A stretch of 63,798 nucleotides of DNA, the filler included, from Pelomyxa schiedti (taxonomy: Eukaryota > Protista > Evosea): NCBI GenBank assembly GCA_020536535.1. It is 10 parts of 10 records of this genome, joined end to end, with 100 filler letters (N's around TTAATTAATTAA, not from the genome) between each part and the next. Parts side by side here need not be neighbours in the genome. Positions count along the whole stretch, not along the records: positions 20,593 to 40,056 come from JAHLWZ010000689.1; 9 more parts are not named here. The stretch is one strand, 5' to 3'. Position numbers and translations under genes: made by a program. Of this stretch, positions 3,539-36,100 are shown piece by piece. Within the stretch, counting starts at the first letter, position 1. Every line of letters starts with the position of its first letter. The notes under the pieces were generated by a model, which was not told where the DNA came from, did not search any database, and worked only from the letters and a program-made list of their open reading frames with translations.

Positions 3539-6020
3539 ATGTCTACGACGACAACGTCAACGGCGTCCACCGGGCTGGATGCAATGATTATGGGAAATGT
3601 TTTGCTGATGCTCACGCGACCCGCGAGGCTGGACAACAACACCACGAGGGGTGCGGCGCCGATCCCTGCGTGTCTCAAGCCAAATTTGCATGCTGTGTTC
3701 GTGGTCGCTCGTGTTTGTTCCGTACGTTGTGGTTTTTTTTTCCCCCGTGTAAAAAAAAGTAACTGTTATTATGGGACTGTATTTGTTTGTGTTTTTATTT
3801 GTCAAATATATATATATAATAGTTATTATATGAATATATGTATTAACTAAGCTCTCACTTCCGTTTCTAATAAAATGAGTGCAATATTTTCATTGAGTTG
3901 GACTTTGTTAGCGAGATATCTCCCAACGGTAGTAATGAGATGCCCAGGAGTGGAATAGGGCTTGCAGCTCGAACGCACTGTGGCAGATAATGTACCAGCG
4001 TGACTTTGGGCACTTCCCTCTGCCTGGCGCGGAGGAACCTCCTTCTGATTCCAACTGGAAGCAGATTTATAAGGACCGCTTATTCGGGACTTTTGTTGTT
4101 CATCTCACAACTGGAATTCCAGCCGACTCCCCAACGTATGGAACTGAAGATAAATACTGAAGATAAAGTTGGCAACCTCAATTGCACCCACTGACTTTTT
4201 CCATAGAATATCCCGGGAATTTTTCCAGCACTGGATGTTTTCGAAAAATAGATGCCCTGTCCACCTAGAAGTGTTTTCTGGGCTCCCCCCTGNNNNNNNN
4301 NNNNNNNNNNNNNNNNNNNNNNNNNNNNNNNNNNNNNNNNNNNNNNNNNNNNNNNNNNNNNNNNNNNNNNNNNNNNNNNNNNNNNNNNNNNNGCAACCTC
4401 AATTGCACCCACTGACTTTTTCCATAGAATATCCCGGGAATTTTTCCAGCACTGGATGTTTTCGAAAAATAGATGCCCTGTCCACCTAGAAGTGTTTTCT
4501 GGGCTCCCCCCTGCGTTTGGCGTTCGACCTCCAAGACAGCTTCCTGGAATCCAAATGGGGAAGAAAAAACCTGCTGTATGCGTTTCTTTTATATCCCAGT
4601 TTCTTCTTATTGCTGGGTGTCCTTACACCGAGGAAGACTTTGTTGAGGTTTGTCATTGATGTTTATTTGTGTTAGCTGACCCTTGTTTGATATGATAGAT
4701 GGGTCAAAAAATGGCCGAAAAGATATTTTTACCAGCGTTTGATGAGGATGACCCTGATGAAAGTGAAGAGAACAAGACTGTGCGTCATGTCTCTGCTCAC
4801 ATCGAAGATCATACTTTACTCACATTAAGTATTGAGGTTGATAACTAACAGCTACACTCGCTGTATAGCCGTAATTTATTTGTTCTGATCAAAGCTAGGT
4901 GCTTGCCAAGGATCCGATTGCCACTTTGATGAATCGGGCACGCAGCAAGCTTGTTAGTTTCAGTAGTTATGCACTCTCCGAAAGTGTCGGTGTCTTGCTT
5001 CACCCCATGTTCAAGTATGTCTTTCTATCAGATGGAAAAGAAAATCACAATTTGAAAGGACACTGAGGAAATACAATCGGCACCTCAAGAAAGCTATCTC
5101 CGGAAAGGGGAAAGCTACAACAGCCTGCTGGGATGGACAACTCAGCCAACGCTCCCTTTCCCGGCAAATAAAGGGGGAGTACCTGAACGCGTTTGGGTGC
5201 AAAACTGACTGGTACCCACCTCGTCGTCACTTTATCTTTTCACCAACAAGCATTCATTCTCAAAGGTCGAGTTCAGAAGTGTTGGAAGACCCCAGCTGCC
5301 TGAAACTCGCAAAATGTACCCGGGGTTGCACACAATGGAGTGTAGTATCACCAAACGGTTCAACAATCAACTGGGTATTTTCTCCACCGCATCAACTTCT
5401 GCTCTGGTCCATGTGCGTTTTTCCCCACCTTTTTAANNNNNNNNNNNNNNNNNNNNNNNNNNNNNNNNNNNNNNNNNNNNNNNNNNNNNNNNNNNNNNNN
5501 NNNNNNNNNNNNNNNNNNNNNNNNNNNNNNNNNNNNGTACCCGGGGTTGCACACAATGGAGTGTAGTATCACCAAACGGTTCAACAATCAACTGGGTATT
5601 TTCTCCACCGCATCAACTTCTGCTCTGGTCCATGTGCGTTTTTCCCCACCTTTTTAATACTAATAGTATTTCCCAACTCGAATTCTAAACAAATTATCTC
5701 TGCTAGTGTACTTGGTGAGGAGGACACCCTAGAGGACAAGTATGGAGTAAGCGGTTCAGACTTGGACCAACTCGAGGAGGCTTTCAGCAGGTAACAATTT
5801 GTAGTGGGTGGATATTCTTGACTGACCACCAAAACAGGGAACAACAAGCCACTGGCAGAACTGGTGACCACGACACTACTGTGTGTTACCCCCCACCCTA
5901 GGGAATACTATTCAACCTTATATTGAACACTAGGTGGAAGTTCTGCAGAGGGAGTTTGAAATTGACATTAATAAGTATGGTGATTCCGGAGCCTCTATTA
6001 CCGAAACCGACAACTCCTAA
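3539..6020 (+). CDS. F-box protein, multi-exon, C-terminal region unknown
   Basis: Exon 3539-3721 spliced to exon 3948 onward gives ...VFVVARVCS/EWNRACSSNALWQIMYQRDF, an F-box C-terminal consensus. Further GT-AG exons continue in frame (ISREFFQHW..., KSQFERTLRKY..., VEVLQREFEIDINKY...NS*). Two 100-N gaps are crossed. Confidence 0.6.
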
Positions 6021-20592: not shown

Positions 20593-21377
20593 AACAGGGT
20601 GTGGTAGTGCACTACAACTGGTACTAGTACAACAGGTTGTTGTTGCTGAAGTAGTACTACTACTGGAGTTTGTATTAGTATTTGGACTTGAATTTGAGGC
20701 ACTGGGAGTACCCCGTGTAGTGCAATTGCTTGATGACGCCGTGTTTGTTGGTGGCGTTTCGGCGGGTGGTTTTGCGATTATGGGTGTGGCCGGTTGACTT
20801 GGTTCCCCGGACATTGGAAAGGCTTTTTTTCTCGTCGTTCGCGTTTGTGTTGTTGATGGGTTAGGAGAAGCCTCATCAGTATCATCTTGGCGCAACCAGA
20901 ACGTTCAGTTCTGTTATCCCTTGACTGACGGACTGAGAGTGACACATCACTTTCCTTCTTGAGCATTGACCAGTCCATTCCGGAATAGAGTCGAAAATTT
21001 TTTGTGCAACGCAATTTGCCCGCAAAATTGGAGGAACTTTCTTACAAGTCCGTCCCTTCGCGTCTTTTTAAACGGCAAGAAAATACAAATACAAATCACA
21101 AAACAAAAAAAAAAACAAAGCAAACCCAAGAACAACTCAAGAGTCAAACACAATGGTAACCAACACACACTCAACAACAAATTGGCGTTTGCCACACGTT
21201 TTTGATTGTTTTTTTTTTTATTTTAATGTGCAACACCACAGTAAAAGTATGGCGTATTAACGTACAACGTATAGGGCAAGTGGGCAGCACTCGCAGCACA
21301 GAACCACGGAATCCACCTCATCTCCGTCTCTCACGGCCACAACCTCCGCATCGACCCAGCACACCCAACTGAGGTCA
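20593..21377. repeat. Divergent duplicate of 23857-24637 (5' ends of the RNA ligase and beta-trefoil genes)
   Basis: Collinear sequence with SNPs and small indels, ending at a 100-N gap. Confidence 0.9.
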
Positions 21378-21713
21378 NNNNNNNNNNNNNNNNNNNNNNN
21401 NNNNNNNNNNNNNNNNNNNNNNNNNNNNNNNNNNNNNNNNNNNNNNNNNNNNNNNNNNNNNNNNNNNNNNNNNNNNNGGAGTTTAAAGACCACACAATAG
21501 AGAAACCAGTAACAGAGGTGTCACCGACAGAGAATACAAGTGCCCCCGGGTCTCATCAGTGCGGCCTTCAACTCAAGGTACTTGAGTTTTTAGAGCTGTG
21601 ACGTGCCCTTTCTCCTGCGAAAAACCCGTTTATACTTGATTATGGGAAAATGATTCGAAAACCATGAAGTTTTTGTTTTTTTTTTTTTTTTGTGTTGATT
21701 TTGTTGTTATTGG

Positions 21714-24081
21714 TCAGTCTTGTGCGTTTTGCATGAGCCAGATGACAAACCGGCACTGGTCAGAATCCATGTAAGCAAAGTGCATGAGGGATGGATCGCA
21801 GTGGAGTGCGGATCCAAGCCAGTTCATTCCATCGTCATAGGACCACCCCTTCTTGGATATGTACTTGCGTAGAAGGTCGTGTGCCATCAGCCGGAGCCTC
21901 TTTGTTTGCTTCGCGGCTGGTACTCCAAGTGGTTCCCCTTGTTTGAATACTTTCTGGCTGCCGGGAATTTTCCGGAGTGTATCCACTTGATAGGCTTCCA
22001 TTGTGAGGTCACAGTTGCTGTCAGTGCACATCCAGAGGTAGGTTCCTGGTTGGTACACCTTTTTTCCGGGAAGGAATCAGAGTGATGTAGGGGCAACAAT
22101 TGAGAGTACCTTCACATCTCCGGTTCTAAATCCACAATGACAATCTTTCGCAACTGCAAGAGGAACTCGCATTTTCACACAGGTCATAGGTTTGCCACAG
22201 TAGCAGTGCAGGGGCTCACCCGGAGATCTGTCTGCCGGCAAATGAATTGGTGCCAAAGCTGAAAGTTCCGGAACTGTGTCAGCCTGGCAATATCGGGCAT
22301 AAGTTTAACTGTGTATTTATGGTTTGTTACCTGAATCGGGCAAAATATTGTTCCGGGAACAGTGGGGTGACCTGCTCTACGGAGTTTGTCCTGTTCTACC
22401 AGCCGCTTTTCAATAGCACCGGCTGTGGCATTCTTTTTTGGAGGTCTATCACTCGCAAGTACAGCGTTATATAAGTTCTCCCAATAGGTGACTCTTTCTC
22501 TCAGTTTGTCACGTTCGTGAGGAGGAACTGGCAAACAGGGATGACTTTCTGCAAAAACCAACTCCTTCACAAGGGGAAGGGTTTTGTTCGCAATCACTCC
22601 GGCCATGAAGTGCGCATCCACTGACGACCACCCTTTGTACTTCAGGCGGTGCATGAGGAACCACTGGGAGCTCTTCAGTTTGAGCCGGCAGTTGTTGATG
22701 TCGAGCAGAACGACACCCTCGAATCCTATGTATTTGTCACATTGTTCCTGAACGAATGCTTTGGCTTCTGCCATAGTCGTGCATAGTCTTCTCTCTGGGC
22801 GTCTCATGCCGCCAGCAAGGGCCATGGAATCCAATAGATCTTGTTCAGCAACAGCGTGGGTTGGTCTGTGCCACGCTCCAAGAAGAAATACAATCGGTTC
22901 AGTGTAAGGCCTTATCACCTAATGAATTGGGTTTGAGTTATTGTTAAAAAGTGGAAGAAGGATTTTACCTGATTGAAGGGAGAGCACATTTCGAGGCTGT
23001 ATACCCACTGTGGGTCGAGATTTTCAGCGGGTGGCTTGATAAAGTCAAAGACAAGGTCCTGAAAGGTTTTGGGTGATGAGGGGTGAACCGCTTCCCGGCA
23101 AAACGTGTGGCGGTTGGTTACAAGCCACTTTCCTTGGAATTCGAAAAGAAGCAAGAAGGTCCCGTCTTCCTATTGTTATAAAGTAAGAGCACATCGCATC
23201 GGAACTCTCTCGTTACCTTCACTTGCGCTTCAAATGGTTTGCTGAAACAGAACCGTTCCTTAGTTTTACTCTCAATTTCGTAGAACCTGTCAAAGCCCTT
23301 AGACACCACTTTCACAAACCTCAGGCCTTCTCCACCTCTTATTCCAGCACTTCCTCCTCCCTGGTCTCCCATCACAGCCCTTGCGTCGCATACAGCATCA
23401 CAAATAGCACCATCTGACAACTCTCCATCGTCATCAGCTTGCTCGCCAGTATTCCCATCTGTCTGTAAAGAAGAATCAAAATGATAAAGGACATTTTCAT
23501 AAAAATACAAATTCTTCCGGCTCGTATTATAATTCCAGAGGGGAAATATAAATAGAATTTATATATTTATATTCTAATCCAAAAAAAAGGAGGAATTCGG
23601 ACAAACAAACCACAGCGGGTTTCTTCTCAGTCTGAACCACCAATCCTCTGCATTCATTGACAACAGGGTGATTGAATGGGCTCCTCAGCTGGTGATAATT
23701 AAGCACAGCGAGGGGCACGCTGGTGTCAGGGTGTGACAGGCAGTGCAAGTGGAATTTCTTGACCAGCAACTCCAAGTCGTTGCCATTCTCCTGCAGCCAA
23801 GTCTCAACATTCAACACCCCAATAGACCCACTGTCACCACTACTTGAAACACCAAAAACAGGGTGTGGTAGTGCACTACAACTGGTACTAGTACAACAGG
23901 TTGTTGTTGCTGAAGTAGTACTACTACTGGAGTTTGTATTAGTATTTGGACTTGAATTTGAGGCACTGGGAGTACCCTGTGTAGTGCAATTGCTTGTTGA
24001 TGCCGCCGTGTTTGTTGGTGGCGTTTCGGCGGGTGGTTTTGCGATTATGGGTGTGGCCGGTTGACTTGGTTCCCCGGACAT
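21714..24081 (-). CDS. T4 Rnl1-like ATP-dependent RNA ligase with a C-terminal DUF3268-like zinc finger
   Basis: VNECRGLVV, VSKGFDRFY, motif I K/EDGT (Lys codon just before intron 23170-23216), SLEMCSPFNQ, motif IV FEGVVLLD and motif V RLKLKS. C-terminus HCYCGKPM...LWMC...CD...PLG...AHD...WL...HF...DQCRFVI. Confidence 0.85.
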
Positions 24082-24485
24082 TGGAAAGGCTTTTTTTATC
24101 GTCGTTCGGTTTGTGATGGGTTAGGAGAAGCCTCATCAGGATCATCTTGGCGCAACCAGATCGTTCAGTTCTGTTATCCCTTGACTGATGGACTGAGAGT
24201 GACACATCACTTTCCTTCTTGAGCATTGACCAGTCCATTCCGGAATAGAGTCGAAAATTTTTTGTGTAACGCAATTTGCCCGCAAATTTGGAGGAACTTT
24301 CTTACAAGTCCGTCCCTTCGCGTCTTTTTAAACGGCAAGAAAATACAAACACAAATCACAAAACAAAAAAAAAACAAAGCAAACCCAAGAACAACTCAAG
24401 AGTCAAACACAATGGTAACCAACACACACTCAACAACAAATTGGCGTTTGCCACACGTTTTTGATTGTTTTTTTTTTTTATTTTA

Positions 24486-25145
24486 ATGTGCAACACCACA
24501 GTAAAAGTATGGCGTTTTAACGTACAACGTATAGGGCAAGTGGGCAGCACTCGCAGCACAGAACCACGGAATCCACCTCATCTCCGTCTCTCACGGCCAC
24601 AACCTCCGCATCGACCCAGCACACCCAACTGAGGTCAACGCCGACGGCGCCGAGGGCATCTACGCCACATGGATGGTCGAGAAGGTATATCCCCACTCAT
24701 CTACATGTACATTCAACCTAATGTAAATTGACAACTCAAAATCAACGAATGAAAACAAACGCATTAAACAAATACACTAAAACAAAGTCAAATCCAATCC
24801 AATACAATCCAATCAAATCAAATCAAATAAAATAAGTACTCTTCACAGACTAATTTTGTATAACAGGTCGGAAAGAAGACCAAGGAGTTCCGCTTCAGGA
24901 ACAAGTCATCTGGCAAGTACCTCCGCATTGACCCCGCAAACCACAAGCCAGACTGTGAGGGAGTCGGCGGACCCCTCTGCACATTCAAGCTCCACTGGAT
25001 CAACAAGGAGCACTTCATCTGCTGCCTCGAGAGCGTTCAGTTCCACGGAATGCACTTGGGAGTCTTCCCCGATGGAAGGATGAAGCCAGCCAACCTCACC
25101 GCTGAGGGACCCCATGGCCAATGGAGGATCAAGCTCCACGTTTGA
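24486..25145 (+). CDS. Small beta-trefoil protein (fascin/hisactophilin-like), 3 exons
   Basis: Exons 24486-24500, 24535-24684 and 24867-25145. Three internal repeats: HGHNLRID...ATWMVE, SGKYLRID...CTFKLH, HGMHLGVF...GQWRIK. Confidence 0.7.
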
Positions 25146-30434: not shown

Positions 30435-30507
30435 TGGAGGTGGAGGGTTTCGATCCCCCTGCCTCTCGTATGCAAAACGAGCGCTCTACCAATTGAGCTA
30501 CACCCCC
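30435..30507 (-). tRNA. trnA-UGC: tRNA-Ala(UGC)
   Basis: 73-nt cloverleaf: acceptor GGGGGTG/CACCTCC with G3:U70, D-arm TAGCTCAATTGGTAGAGC, anticodon loop TTTGCAT, T-loop ATCGAAA. Confidence 0.96.
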
Positions 30508-30553: not shown

Positions 30554-33004
30554 CTATGGAAATTGATCTGTTTTAGGGTGGAGCAAAGCCTTTGCCTCGG
30601 TGGTGGTAACCCGTTTGGGTTTTTCTGGGTTCATCATCCCGATGAGCACAGATGACCTGAAGATGACCTCCTGGTCATGCTGTGATGTAGCTATTGTGGG
30701 TTCTGTTGCTGCTGTGCCTGGCGGGAGTGGGAATGATTCCTGAAGTTTCGTGGTATTGAACTGACTCATATCCATGAACAACGGCGTGGTGTTCCCAATG
30801 AACCTGTGTGATTGTGGCAGGAGTGCATTGTAGAATGTGAGAGCGAGGGCAAATGAGTCACACTTGGAGTAGGAAATTGTTGCAGCAGTTCCATCAGAAT
30901 TGCGGAGTGTGCTGAGCTCCGGTGGCATTGTTTCTGTGTTTCCCCAAATGGGTGGTTGTGCAGAAACTGGAAGAATCATCTGCGTGTTGTTCCTGCCACA
31001 GTGCAACGCGTGGCTAAAGCCTCTCAATGTGAGTTTCCTGGTGTCTGGGTGCACCAGGATGTTTTCTTCTTTGATGTCTCTGACTTTTTTGTGAGTGTAA
31101 TTTTTGGCGGGGAAGAAAAGAAGAACCTGTGAACAATACAATGTGACTCAAGGTGGTGGACAGCCTCAAGTGCCTGCAGAAAGAGGTCCACTGCAACTCC
31201 AACCAAAGAGGAAGGTTCAAAGAGGGTGAGGAATGCTGAAAGAGTGATGCCACAATAAGGCATGAGAATCCCAAGTGCCTTGTTGTTGCTGTTGGTTGGT
31301 GAACCCTCAGTGGGAAGAAGTTGTTCCATGAAGGAAGCAGGTAATCTGTACCTATTTAAGACCGTAAGTAGGTGCTAAAACAAGCAATCTTATGTTGCAA
31401 GGTACCTTGGAATCACAATGGCACCAAGTGGGCAAATAACATTGGGATGATGAGGAATCAAAGAAAGATTCATGCACTCTGCAAAGAACTGACGTCGCTG
31501 CCGTGTTGGCGTAGGTGTATTTTCCCAGTTAAAGTGAACCTTCATTACCATTTCTTGCTGCAATTCCTGATCACCACCTGAACTGCTGGAGTTTGGTTGC
31601 CTATTGTATTGCACAATGAATGTAGCTGACTTGTTTGCGTTTTCAACAACAAGTAGCCGCTTCAATATGAAGTTGGAAATATCAGCCGAGATCATTGAAG
31701 TCATAGTTTGAATTAGGCCTTGCATCTAGGTTGAATGGGTCATTGAATAAAATTTATAATTCAATTGAGTTTAATTTAAAATTGTAATACAATTACAGGT
31801 AAACCTGCTCATCATGAACTGTGAGTTCCCCCAACTGTTTGTTCAAGGCCTGAACTTGCTGTCTCAAGAGTTGGACCTGAAGCTGGGCAGTACCTCTGTT
31901 GCCGAGGCAAGCGGCCTTGTCCAATCACTCAAGTGCCTGACTCACGTTCTGTTCAACACCATCACCCTTGCTGAGACAGACGGCAAGGTGAAACATTGCA
32001 ACTGGGTCTCCAGCATCAGCACCCATCTGGAAAAATGAAGCAACAATCCTGTCAGCAGGAGTACCCACGAACTTTTGGTAACACAGCCCCAGCTCGCCGA
32101 ATGCCTCTCTCCCACCACTCTCTTTTGATTCAGCTTCCTGATTTGCCCTGTTGTACAACTCCCTTGCCTTGTTTGGATTTGGCATGAACGCACCCCCGTC
32201 ACCCCTCTCATGGCAGTTCCCAAGGAAAACCATGCACCTCCCATTGCCCGCATTTGCAGGACCACTCAGCATCGAAATGGCCTTCCCCATGTCCCTTTCC
32301 ACGCCGCACCCACACGAATAGCACCACGCCACATAAGCCACTGCATCCCTTGAGCTCGACTGATTGAACGTGATCAAAGCCCTCTCCACGTCCCTCTCCA
32401 CGCCCACCCCCCACAGATAGCACACGCCAAGCCGCACACTCGATTTAGCAGCACCTGCAGCCCTGTTGTACAGTGACACCGCCCTGCTTGGGTCACACCT
32501 CACCCCGATCCCGTTCTGATAGCACCACCCAAGCTCACACATCGCCCTGCTGCTTCCCATATCCACAGCCTCGCCCAGCAACCCCACAAACTCGTCCCAC
32601 ACATCCCCACCACCAACACCAACAGCAACACCACAGCCGCCACCACCACCTGATTCCACAACACATGAACATAAGTTCGTAGGCATGATCATCATCTTCT
32701 TCTTCTTGTGCAGCATGGCCACGGAGTAGACACCGTCGCCGTGGTTTGCGTCGCGGTACAGCTGCAGGGCCTTGGCTGGGTCGGCGCAGTGAGTGGCCAC
32801 TTCGCACATGTAGTAATCGGCCAGAGCCACGCGGGACGGTGAGTGGCCCCAGTGTTCGGAGGCCGAGCCCCAGAGCGCCAGGGCGTGGCCGACGTCGACG
32901 GGGTGGCCACCCCAGCCTCGGTAGAACTTGACAGCGAGGCTGTACATGGCCTCAGGATCCCTGAGTTCCGCTTTGCGATGCAATTCTGCAGTGTTGCCCC
33001 CCAT
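30554..33004 (-). pseudogene. Sel1-repeat - coiled coil - kinase-like gene with one in-frame TGA
   Basis: Many Sel1 repeats, then QALE*LDKAA (TGA at 31925-31927 where Trp is expected). The frame stays open and splices to a kinase domain (VMKV, HHPNVI, HR/DIKEENIL, MPPEL) in which DFG is replaced by RGF. Confidence 0.7.
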
Positions 33005-33181: not shown

Positions 33182-36100
33182 ATGAGGAGGGCAACAACTT
33201 TGTCACAGTCACGCAAGGGGCCACGCGTGGGACCCCCCCAGGCGTGGTTCCGTGCCGCGGACGATGGCGACACCGACGCACTGCGGCGCCATCTGGCCGG
33301 CGACCGCGACATACTAAACTCTGTCAACCACGAACAACAACGAGTGGTGAGTGCAATGCGTAACAACTCCCTTTTTCTTCCGACACGATAATGACTCGTT
33401 CTCGCCGCCACACACACACACACAGACAGCGTTGCATTTTGCCACGTGTAGCGGGCAACCGAAGTGCGTCGAGTTCCTGCTGTCAATGAATATCGACGTG
33501 AATTCTCAGGTATGAGGGCCCTTATTTTGTAGGCACTCACAAATTTGTATCTCTCACTTCACAGATTGTGTGTAATATCCATCTTGATTATGTTTTCATT
33601 CCCTTTCCTCTAACACATAAATCCAGGGGTACCTTGTACGTACTGCCAACTCTCAATCCTTTCATTGCGTTTATTCATCAATTTCTGACTGGCTTCAATT
33701 TATCTCTCTTTGCTTCACTCTCTGTGGCATGTTTAGGATGTGTGTAACTGCTCCCACCCCTTTTTTATTGCGTTTATTCATCAGTTTCTGACTGGCTTCA
33801 ATTTATATCTCTTTGCTTCACTCTCTGTGGCATGTTTAGTATGTGTGTAACTGCTCTCATCCCTTTTTTATTGCGTTTATTCATCAGTTTCTGACTTGAT
33901 TCAATTTATATCTCTTTGCTTCACTCTCTGTGGCATGTTTAGGATGTGCGTAACTGCTCTCATCCCTTTTTTATTGCGTTTATTCATCAATTTATGACTC
34001 ATCCCTTTTTTATTGCATTTATTCATCAATTTCTGACTGGCTTCAATTTATCTCTCTTTGCTTTGCTCTCTGTGGCATGTTTAGGAGGTGTGTAACTGCT
34101 CTCAACCCTTTTTTATTGCGTTTATTCATCAGTTTCTGACTTGCTCCAATTTCTCTCTCTTTGCTTCACTCTCTGTGGCATGTTTAGGATGTGTGTAACT
34201 GCTCTCATCCCTTTTTTATTGCGTTTATTCATCAATTTATGACTTGATTCAATTTATCTCTCTCTGCTTCACTCTCTGTGGCATGTTTAGATTGTGTGTA
34301 ACTGCTCTCATCCCTTTTTTATTGCGTTTATTCATCAATTTATGACTTGATTCAATTTATCTCTCTTTGCTTCACTCTCTGTGGCATGTTTAGATTGTGT
34401 GTAACTGCTCCCATCCCTTTTTTATTGCATTTATTCATCAATTTCTGATTGGCTTCAATTTATCTCTCTTTGCTTTGCTCTCTGTGGCATGTTTAGATTG
34501 TGTGTAACTGCTCTCATCCCTTTTTTATTGCGTTTATTCATCAGTTTCTGACTTGATTCAATTTATATCTCTTTGCTTCACTCTCTGTGGCATATTTAGG
34601 ATGTGCGTAACTGCTCTCAACCCTTTTTTATTGCATTTATTCATCAATTTATGACGATTCAATTTATCTCTCTCTGCTTCACTCTCTGTGGCATGTTTAG
34701 CTTGTGTGTATCCACTCCCATCCCTTTTTTATTGCATTTATTCATCAATTTCTGACTGGCTTCAATTTATCTCTCTTTGCTCCACTCTCTGTGGCATGTT
34801 TAGGATGTGTGTAACTGCTCTCATCCCTTTTTTATTGCATTTATTCATCAATTTATGACGATTCAATTTATCTCTCTTTGCTTCACTCTCTGTGGCATGT
34901 TTAGTATGTGTGTAACTGCTCTCAACCCTTTTTTATTGCGTTTATTCATCAGTTTCTGACTTTATTCAATTTATCTCTCTTTGATTCACTCTCTGTGGCA
35001 TGTTTAGCTTGTGTGTAACTGCTCCCATCCCTTTTTTATTGTATTTATTCATCAATTTCTGACTGGCTTCAATTTATCTCTCTTTGCTCCACTCTCTGTG
35101 GCATGTTTAGTATGTGTGTAACTGCTCTCATCCCCTTTTTATTGCGTTTATTCATCAATTTATGACTTTATTCAATTTATATCTCTTTGCTTCACTCTCT
35201 GTGGCATGTTTAGATTGTGTGTAACTGCTCTCAACCCTTTTTTGTTGCATTTATTCATCAATTTATGACTTTCTTCAATTTATCTCTCTTTGCTTCACTA
35301 TGTGGCATGTTTAGCTTGTGTGTAACTGCTCTCATCCCTTTTTTATTGCGTTTATTCATCAATTTCTGACTTGAATCAATTTCTCTCTGCAACACTTTCT
35401 CTCATTTTTCTCCCTATCATTGGACAATTGGATCCTTTTATTTGCCATAAGGGAGTAAGTACTCCTGACAGCTTTTTTTTTGTTCTAACTTTCCGCGATT
35501 TTTATGATATTTTGCACTGCTGCAGATTGTATACTCCACTCCTTGAATTTTTCCTGTGCTTACCTTGTTATTTTTCAGGAAGTACAACATTTTTTTTCTT
35601 GTTCTTGTTGTTACTCATATATCTTTTGGGGGGTCTCTTTCAAATTGAAAGGGTGATGTACGGCCACCCCTCCCAATGTCCTTTGTTTTCTTTCCTTTAT
35701 TTTATGCTTGACACAAAACTTAATTTTCGTCTCCCTCTCTCTCAGACCGCGCTTCATCTTGCTTGCAGGCGCGGAAACGTTACAATTGTGAAACGACTTC
35801 TGTCTTGTGTGGGTATTGGCACTCACATCAAGGTTGTTTCACACCCGCCCCGCCCCTTGTTTGATTGATATTGTTGTAATTTTCCTGTCGGAACAGAACA
35901 AGGAGGGAAAAACAGCACTTGAGTGCTCGAAAAATGATCATGTGCGTCAAGTGTTCCAAGCTGTGTGTTCAGCCACAACATCAGCAACAACACAGGCAGT
36001 CACCACTCCCAAAACAGCCCAACAACAGCCATATCTGATACCACCCTCTGCTCCAAACAAGCCATCACCATCATCCACCCCACCAAAACCACAGCCACAA

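Follow-up and report, generated by a model that had tools for sequence, protein, structure and literature searches.

An intron-bearing gene of Pelomyxa schiedti encodes a predicted Rnl1-type RNA ligase with a DUF3268 zinc-finger tail

The gene and its transcript

The window analysed here is a stretch of 63,798 nucleotides (nt) made up of ten joined parts of assembly GCA_020536535.1 of the anaerobic amoeba Pelomyxa schiedti. In the part that comes from JAHLWZ010000689.1, the minus strand carries a gene that is predicted to encode an RNA ligase of the T4 Rnl1 family, continued at its C-terminus into a DUF3268 zinc-finger module (Table 1). The six exons contribute 157, 82, 67, 196, 58 and 114 amino acids (aa; exons 1 to 6), and their translations tile exactly the 674-aa protein P0001, deposited in GenBank as KAH3759428.1, 'RNA ligase [Pelomyxa schiedti]', on which the full-length protein analyses were run; its record places it on a contig of 19,464 bp, as long as this part of the window. 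All five introns are of the GT..AG type, lie in phase 0 and have a G+C content (GC) of 0.27-0.45. The second of them stands directly behind the codon of the catalytic lysine, as an earlier note on this DNA, made from the sequence alone, had pointed out.

Evidence of splicing came from contigs of two single-cell RNA sequencing (RNA-seq) runs of the same study. One contig of 1003 nt covers exons 6 and 5 and part of exon 4 (21717 to 22817) and lacks exactly 22059-22109 and 22284-22330, introns 5 and 4. In contrast, a contig from a DNA run is collinear with the genome throughout, both introns included. Since the spliced RNA contig joins the ligase exon with motifs IV and V to the DUF3268 exons, the ligase and the zinc finger are not separate genes, the outcome that the earlier note had named as fatal to its proposal. 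Introns 1-3 are consistent with the deposited gene model. At this locus P. schiedti has a genuine nuclear gene that is transcribed and spliced; the resident, intron-bearing gene that the earlier note had envisaged is thus borne out by its five GT-AG introns and by the removal of introns 4 and 5 in RNA.

Table 1. Features of the ligase gene and of the surrounding contig, in window coordinates (slashes mark splice sites)
Feature	Position	Strand	Remarks
RNA ligase-DUF3268 gene, whole coding region	21714..24081	-	six exons, 674 codons plus stop; three-frame minus-strand reading
Exon 1	24081..23611	-	aa 1-157; Rnl1 N-terminal segment including ECRGLVV (R145 = T4 R54)
Codons 1-85	23827..24081	-	Ser/Thr/Asn/Pro-rich low-complexity N-terminal extension; in no relative in the alignment
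Intron 1	23463..23610	-	148 nt, GTTTGT..ACAG, GC 0.27; matches the deposited protein
Exon 2	23462..23217	-	aa 158-239; acidic/Gly-rich insert, DRFYE (R216, F217), last codon Lys239
Catalytic Lys codon	23217-23219	-	AAG, end of exon 2; donor GTAACG immediately after
Intron 2	23170..23216	-	47 nt, AAG/GTAACG..AATAG/GAA; position and phase as in a Paratrimastix intron
Exon 3	23169..22969	-	aa 240-306; motif I EDGT, R260, motif III E299 (= T4 E159)
Intron 3	22919..22968	-	50 nt; position and phase as in the Paratrimastix L153/I154 intron
Exon 4	22918..22331	-	aa 307-502; motif IV EGVV, motif V RLKLKS, helical region aa ~390-487
EGVV motif	22709-22720	-
RLKLKS motif	22670-22687	-
Intron 4	22284..22330	-	47 nt; spliced out in contigs of two RNA runs; joint 22282/22330 (cut +1)
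Exon 5	22283..22110	-	aa 503-560; linker and first part of putative Zn-binding beta region (C529-x-C531, C550-H-C552)
Intron 5	22059..22109	-	51 nt, within the DUF3268 domain; spliced out in RNA contigs; joint 22056/22108 (cut +2)
Exon 6	22058..21717	-	aa 561-674; C571-x4-C576 and helical half of DUF3268
Stop codon	21714-21716	-	three-frame reading
Second copy of 23857-24640	20593..21377		97% identical, at the contig edge
N gap	21378-21477		100 N
Small divergent gene	24640-25145	+	at least one intron (about 24684-24866)
tRNA-Ala(UGC)	30435-30507	-	intronless
Kinase-like open reading frame	30554-31141	-
Satellite array	33660-35388		~17 copies of a T-rich 103-bp unit, 90-94% matches; higher-order periods 245-348 bp

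Catalytic domain and C-terminal module

On the full protein, the two Pfam families proposed in the earlier note both reach their cut-offs: RNA_lig_T4_1 (PF09511) at residues 208-399, with 30.1 bits against 28.3 (relatives score 42-68 bits), and DUF3268 (PF11672) with 28.4 bits, exactly at its cut-off of 28.4. For the latter family, exon 6 alone scores 32.5 bits and the fusion relatives up to 48. Single ligase exons, being too short, found no match in Pfam or NCBIfam. In PHROGs, exons 4 and 1 matched phrog_562 (T4 Rnl1) in collinear order. A tblastn search of phage genomes with exon 4 also placed T4-like Rnl1 on top, yet at E ~1, so that this ranking was used as a lead only, and phmmer searches of the PDB with exon 4 or exon 6 returned noise. 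When a profile of the whole family was compared with the PDB, T4 Rnl1 was found at E 3.9e-26, whereas the fungal Trl1 ligase domains followed at 2.8e-9 or worse; RtcB gave no match in Pfam or PDB searches of the protein or the family.

The motifs listed in the earlier note (KEDGT, EGVV, KLK) are all present, and K239-x-D241-G242, E373-G374 and K386-x-K388 are conserved. Across the 42-member family alignment, F217, K239, D241, G242, E299, E373, G374, K386 and K388 are invariant, and R145 and R216 are conserved in at least 90% of the members. In the profile alignment, the Pelomyxa columns fall on T4 Rnl1 residues R54, K75/F76, K99/D101/G102, E159, E227/G228 and K240/K242, all of which Wang, Ho and Shuman are said to have shown in 2003 to be essential by mutagenesis.

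The AlphaFold2 (AF2) model of P0001 has a mean predicted local distance difference test score (pLDDT) of 79.4. This value exceeds 90 in the catalytic core, and disorder is confined to residues 1-83 (pLDDT <50) and 164-200. Superposed with VIA on T4 Rnl1 (2c5u), residues 88-398 of the model matched residues 0-252 of the chain with Z 22.4 and a root-mean-square deviation (rmsd) of 2.9 Å over 239 residues. The ligase domain of Trl1 reached a Z of about 18.5 (at most 18.6), Rnl3 about 16, Rnl5 and Rnl2 about 15, and DNA ligases about 12-13. As judged from profiles and from the predicted fold, the view that the catalytic domain is of the Rnl1 type, not Trl1 or RtcB, which the earlier note had also taken, holds.

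T4 RNA ligase 1 (RnlA/gp63; PF09511; PDB 2c5u, 5tt6, 9do4) has the nucleotidyltransferase domain and the Rnl1-type N-terminal segment in common with the Pelomyxa protein. Although it is the best match both by sequence profile and by fold, identity is only about 13-16%, T4 K119 has an Arg as its counterpart, and no equivalent of the helical tRNA-binding domain at the T4 C-terminus can be recognised in the Pelomyxa protein. The Pelomyxa protein adds the C-terminal DUF3268 Zn module, the disordered N-terminus of 85 aa, and an acidic/Gly insert of ~45 aa between the ECRG strand and the DRF element that is found in Pelomyxa only and is disordered in the model; the helical stretch that leads from motif V to the zinc finger is shorter than in its relatives. 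Unlike T4 Rnl1, it is the product of a eukaryotic, nuclear, intron-bearing gene, for which no Pnkp partner is known and no role in tail-fibre attachment is expected.

The ligase domain of fungal and plant Trl1/RNL (PDB 6n67, 6n0v, 9qw7, 8rbj) shows the same motif set and a eukaryotic Rnl1-like adenylyltransferase fold, with Z about 18-18.6. Trl1 pathways heal and seal RNA ends with the help of a 2H phosphoesterase, and one viral relative of the Pelomyxa gene has a 2H gene next door. However, Trl1 unites its ligase with a polynucleotide kinase (PNK, or KIN) and a 2H cyclic phosphodiesterase (CPD), whereas Pfam finds in P0001 only PF09511 and PF11672, with DUF3268 as a different C-terminal extension. 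Trl1 also has a 2'-phosphate requirement. The remark in the earlier note that no PNK domain is visible was correct, and the same applies to CPD. Rnl2, Rnl3 and Rnl5 resemble the Pelomyxa ligase in combining the common nucleotidyltransferase core with a family-specific flanking substrate-binding domain; they are more distant in fold (Z about 15-16), and none of them bears DUF3268 or any Zn-ribbon module.

Modelled alone, residues ~525-674 gave a pLDDT of 89.4 and form seven short strands followed by three helices. The earlier note's recognition of a C-terminal DUF3268 agrees with the Pfam result and with the predicted fold, which matches an ESM Atlas DUF3268 cluster with template modelling (TM) scores of 0.68/0.79 and an rmsd of 2.5 Å over 124 residues. 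Matches in BFVD were phage proteins (E down to 6.5e-6) and one Orpheovirus protein. Foldseek found nothing significant for the domain in the PDB, and a wide VIA search returned only generic matches of three-helix or helix-turn-helix (HTH) kind with Z up to 6.8, including NinB, a weak lead. Some DUF3268 clusters also bear Zn_ribbon_Top1 or integrase SAM-like DNA-binding domains.

The standalone DUF3268 proteins of phages and bacteria (PF11672; phrog_1934, matched by exon 6 at E 3.9e-10) have the same helical half, with its PLG..R..H and H motifs, and a similar Zn-ribbon-like beta part before it. G605, P607, R616, H620 and H653 are invariant within the fusion clade. In contrast to the phage proteins compared, which are ~130-170 aa long and carry the canonical CxxC...CxxC pattern, the members of the fusion clade are attached to a ligase and show CxC...C(H)C...Cx3-4C, represented in Pelomyxa by C529-x-C531, C550-H-C552 and C571-x4-C576. 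The standalone phage genes sit in DNA replication and recombination modules, between SSB/Sak4 and Cas4-type exonuclease/helicase genes. To our knowledge, DUF3268, a common domain in phages, is wholly uncharacterised. The tail is most economically predicted to be a nucleic-acid-binding module, for which RNA and DNA are both possible.

We also noted a DUF3268 open reading frame (ORF) in Vibrio phage K251 g3 (~3870-4340, plus strand), in a frame that the record leaves unannotated. It overlaps an annotated hypothetical gene on the opposite strand and lies directly upstream of a Cas4-domain exonuclease gene.

Distribution of the fusion and origin of the gene

An exhaustive protein search with exon 4 through 1.84 billion representatives returned 47 proteins at E <=1e-3, only two of them from named eukaryotes. 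One match, P0016, was a repetitive false positive and was excluded. The ligase+DUF3268 architecture is present in all 14 matches that are longer than 500 aa and have no inteins. It occurs in metagenome-assembled genomes (MAGs) of Myxococcota, once on a contig of 732 kb, and on a third such GC-rich contig of bacterial type (L012), where its cluster representative P0006 groups with Myxococcota in the tree. In Paratrimastix pyriformis it is encoded by a nuclear gene that extends over 5.6 kb of a 556-kb scaffold and is interrupted by about 13 introns. Four compact, AT-rich contigs with giant-virus traits carry it as well: L008, with 30% GC, 14 copies of the mimivirus-type AAAATTGA motif, a tRNA synthetase and DnaJ; L014, with DUF5906 and an mRNA triphosphatase; and L009 and L013, which consist mostly of ORFans. 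Word-index protein searches with the exon-4 ORF and exon 6 gave nothing useful, a search with the fusion alignment retrieved P0001 alone, and scans of viral and metagenome contigs with back-translated exon-4 patterns found no relatives.

For a maximum-likelihood (ML) tree, LG+C20 PMSF was applied to an alignment of 42 rows by 370 columns, from which P0016, the intein-bearing P0008/P0011 and the fragments P0040/P0044/P0047 had been left out. Here, the 14 fusion proteins and one truncated entry form a single clade (99/97) nested among ligase-only proteins of ~365-380 aa. The closest ligase-only member, P0033, is encoded on a phage-like contig, where its neighbours are an Rnl2-type ligase, HNH genes and a gene with an HD domain. 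The Myxococcota sequences make up a subclade of their own (98/95), apart from Pelomyxa. The Pelomyxa protein, on a long terminal branch (1.3), is sister to P0028 (98/94), whose gene is intronless and lies on L010, a compact contig of 13.6 kb that may belong to a virus or to a compact eukaryote; the cap methyltransferase of L010 is ambiguous in this respect. By the topology of this tree, the ligase+DUF3268 subfamily appears to have arisen once within the phage-type Rnl1 ligases, and we read it as an undescribed Rnl1 subfamily. In the literature that could be searched, no DUF3268 paper treats a ligase fusion and none deals with this Pelomyxa gene.

The exons of the Paratrimastix gene were placed by tblastn and their splice sites read. 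An intron after K82 of Paratrimastix (ACA AAG/GTAGGT...TTAG/GAA GAC GGC) has the same position and phase as Pelomyxa intron 2 (AAG/GTAACG...ATAG/GAA GAC GGG), and the L153/I154 intron coincides exactly with Pelomyxa intron 3 (Q306/V307). Pelomyxa intron 5 sits 2-3 codons off another Paratrimastix intron, in a gapped region. With 460 columns in common, three comparable introns in Pelomyxa and nine in Paratrimastix, at least two coincidences have a P of about 0.001 even when phase-0 sites only are considered. Such sharing points to one intron-bearing eukaryotic gene as the source. Paratrimastix had no firm position in the free tree. A constraint that unites Pelomyxa, P0028 and Paratrimastix in one clade gave a likelihood slightly above that of the free tree (p-AU 0.60, approximately unbiased test). 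Together, the shared introns and the tree test favour a single intron-bearing eukaryotic lineage, which may be ancient and lost in most lines or may have been handed from one anaerobic eukaryote to another.

It is rather unlikely, as we see it, that Pelomyxa acquired its gene alone, from a Myxococcota-like bacterium, a phage or a giant virus, with Paratrimastix as a separate transfer followed by parallel intron gain. The patchy spread, with two named eukaryotes among 47 matches, would suit such a history, as would the intronless gene of the closest relative on a possibly viral contig, the loose placement of Paratrimastix in the free tree and the fact that both shared intron sites are in phase 0, one of them in a classic protosplice context. 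However, two of the three comparable introns coincide exactly, the strongly supported Myxococcota clade stands apart from Pelomyxa, and the constrained clade of the eukaryotes with P0028 is not rejected and even scores slightly better. The shared introns thus argue against a direct transfer from phage or bacterium into Pelomyxa. Given the patchy distribution, lateral spread somewhere in the history of the family remains very likely.

These results recast the earlier note, whose observation is confirmed, well beyond chance, and whose interpretation was right in part. The fusion is no novelty of Pelomyxa, the same architecture being present in Myxococcota, giant-virus-like contigs and Paratrimastix; the relatives indicate that the module was inherited or acquired ready-made. 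The note's suggestion of lateral acquisition survives as lateral spread within the family, whereas a private transfer from a phage or bacterium to Pelomyxa is not favoured.

Two metagenomic Rnl1-like ligases, P0008 (737 aa) and P0011 (594 aa), contain a LAGLIDADG insert directly after motif I (KEDG/C...HN/S), at the site where both protist genes bear an intron. Judging by its flanking residues, the insert is a putative intein; no Hint or splicing-domain match was found in it.

Predicted function and competing explanations

It is likely that this resident, expressed nuclear gene encodes an ATP-dependent polynucleotide ligase of the T4 Rnl1 family, with RNA as the most likely substrate. In the proposed mechanism, Lys239 would attack ATP to form ligase-AMP, the AMP would be handed to a 5'-phosphate end, and attack by a 3'-OH would seal the break. 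The nucleotidyltransferase domain (aa ~88-400) would be followed by a short helical region and then by the DUF3268 module (aa ~525-674), in which a Cys-rich beta Zn-ribbon part and a three-helix part may bind nucleic acid and so choose or tether the substrate. The ligase would work with separately encoded healing enzymes. We infer RNA as the substrate, a role in repair and the job of DUF3268, the last by likeness to the distinct C- or N-terminal domains of other RNA ligase families.

The sole contextual pointer to RNA repair comes from one relative. On the mimivirus-like contig L008 (GCA_040384425.1, 10001-12283), only 43 bp separate the ligase-DUF3268 gene from a gene downstream of it for a 2H phosphoesterase (PF13563, E 1e-21; LigT/CPDase-like). 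Enzymes of the 2H type act in heal-and-seal RNA repair, where they open ends that carry a 2',3'-cyclic phosphate (PMC7824862). A few kb upstream of the ligase, the same contig has a HAD_SAK_2 gene and a gene for an ADP-ribosylglycohydrolase. In one Myxococcota MAG (L005, 6030-8807), the ligase gene overlaps an upstream ORF of 184 aa and a downstream ORF of 165 aa by a few bases, and the trio may be a three-gene operon. The unannotated genes that flank the Myxococcota ligases, these two ORFs included, matched no Pfam family, and hence no bacterial partner enzyme was identified.

Several findings weigh against the reading as an RNA repair ligase of Rnl1 type with one intron-bearing eukaryotic gene behind it. 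The Pfam scores of P0001 barely reach their cut-offs, and exons 1-3 and introns 1-3 have no direct support among the RNA contigs of the runs examined. PF20819, the C-terminal tRNA-binding domain of T4 Rnl1, was not matched in P0001 at E <=0.01, and the best 2c5u superposition ends at T4 residue 252 though the model has helices at 390-487 (the family profile, built mostly from ligase-only members, aligns through T4 residue 366); an Rnl1-like tRNA specificity is therefore not to be assumed. No kinase or phosphoesterase partner was found in the 19-kb Pelomyxa contig or beside the Myxococcota genes. The phage neighbourhood of DUF3268 hints at DNA rather than RNA, and parallel insertion at protosplice sites (AAG/G) could in principle produce two intron coincidences.

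Taking all lines together, we can offer a fuller picture only tentatively, as possible and no more. In it, a distinct RNA ligase subfamily would have replaced the Rnl1 tRNA-binding domain by a Zn-ribbon/helical module as its substrate selector and would serve in RNA repair as a counter-ribotoxin device, having travelled among Myxococcota, giant viruses and anaerobic protists. In eukaryotes it would have moved as a gene with introns, either through transfer between Archamoebae and Preaxostyla or as an old gene captured by viruses.

Were the enzyme to act on DNA instead, in replication or recombination, for example by sealing or circularising single-stranded DNA, DUF3268 would be a DNA-binding module. 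The replication and recombination modules that house phage DUF3268 (with SSB or Sak4, Cas4-type exonuclease and helicase) suggest as much, as do the co-occurrence of topoisomerase C4 Zn-ribbon and integrase SAM-like DNA-binding domains in DUF3268 clusters and the weak resemblance of the helical half to XRE-type HTH domains and lambda NinB. Yet the catalytic domain is nearest to RNA ligases, T4 Rnl1 and then Trl1, with DNA ligases far lower; a 2H phosphoesterase of the RNA end-healing type adjoins the ligase in one viral contig; and the ligase-only sister in the phage contig has a second RNA ligase and a gene with an HD domain as its neighbours. We regard a DNA role as quite improbable. The chance that the protein is an inactive or repurposed relic, such as an RNA-binding scaffold, seems very small: while the long end branch, the disordered inserts peculiar to Pelomyxa, the shortened helical region after motif V and a Met in place of His in the conserved T-H-E element of DUF3268 could all be signs of decay, the family-invariant residues that match known essential residues of T4 Rnl1 are all intact, the gene is transcribed and correctly spliced, and the catalytic core is confidently modelled. 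That the gene is an artefact, be it a contaminant in the single-cell assembly, a chimeric gene model or two merged neighbours, is hardly credible. The genome does come from single-cell data, the contig begins with a 97% duplicate, an N gap lies just downstream of the 3' end of the gene, and the first three exons are outside the joined RNA contigs. Against this stand the GT-AG introns that are spliced out in contigs from two RNA runs and kept in the DNA contig, the neighbouring kinase and Sel1 genes, which are of eukaryotic type and similar in GC, and the same two-domain architecture as a single uninterrupted ORF in 13 other sequences.

The genes around the ligase encode eukaryote-type protein kinases and a Sel1-repeat protein, at a GC similar to that of the ligase gene. 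The duplicate at the contig edge, followed by the N gap, takes in ligase codons 1-74, where the gene runs off the end of the contig, together with the shared upstream region and the beginning of the divergent neighbour. Either the ligase/neighbour unit was duplicated in tandem, or an allele has been scaffolded in. The small divergent gene has its first exon within the duplicated block, and its last exon matched no Pfam family. The tRNA gene lies just past the 3' end of the kinase-like minus-strand ORF. Farther along the contig, where the satellite array lies, GC falls to 0.35-0.37 and the AT skew is strong.

What distinguishes one RNA ligase family from another is the accessory domain that selects the substrate. 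The Pelomyxa gene was already deposited and named 'RNA ligase'; its architecture, its family, the distribution of the family and the shared introns are new, being absent from the literature that could be searched. If the reading as an RNA ligase is true, an Rnl1 core with a zinc-finger DUF3268 tail would be a new class of RNA ligase and would provide the first functional handle on DUF3268. The distribution, which takes in predatory Myxococcota, giant-virus-like genomes and two unrelated anaerobic protists with shared introns, offers a compact test case for the travel of a repair or conflict gene among viruses, bacteria and protists in anoxic habitats, and it bears on gene transfer from eukaryote to eukaryote.

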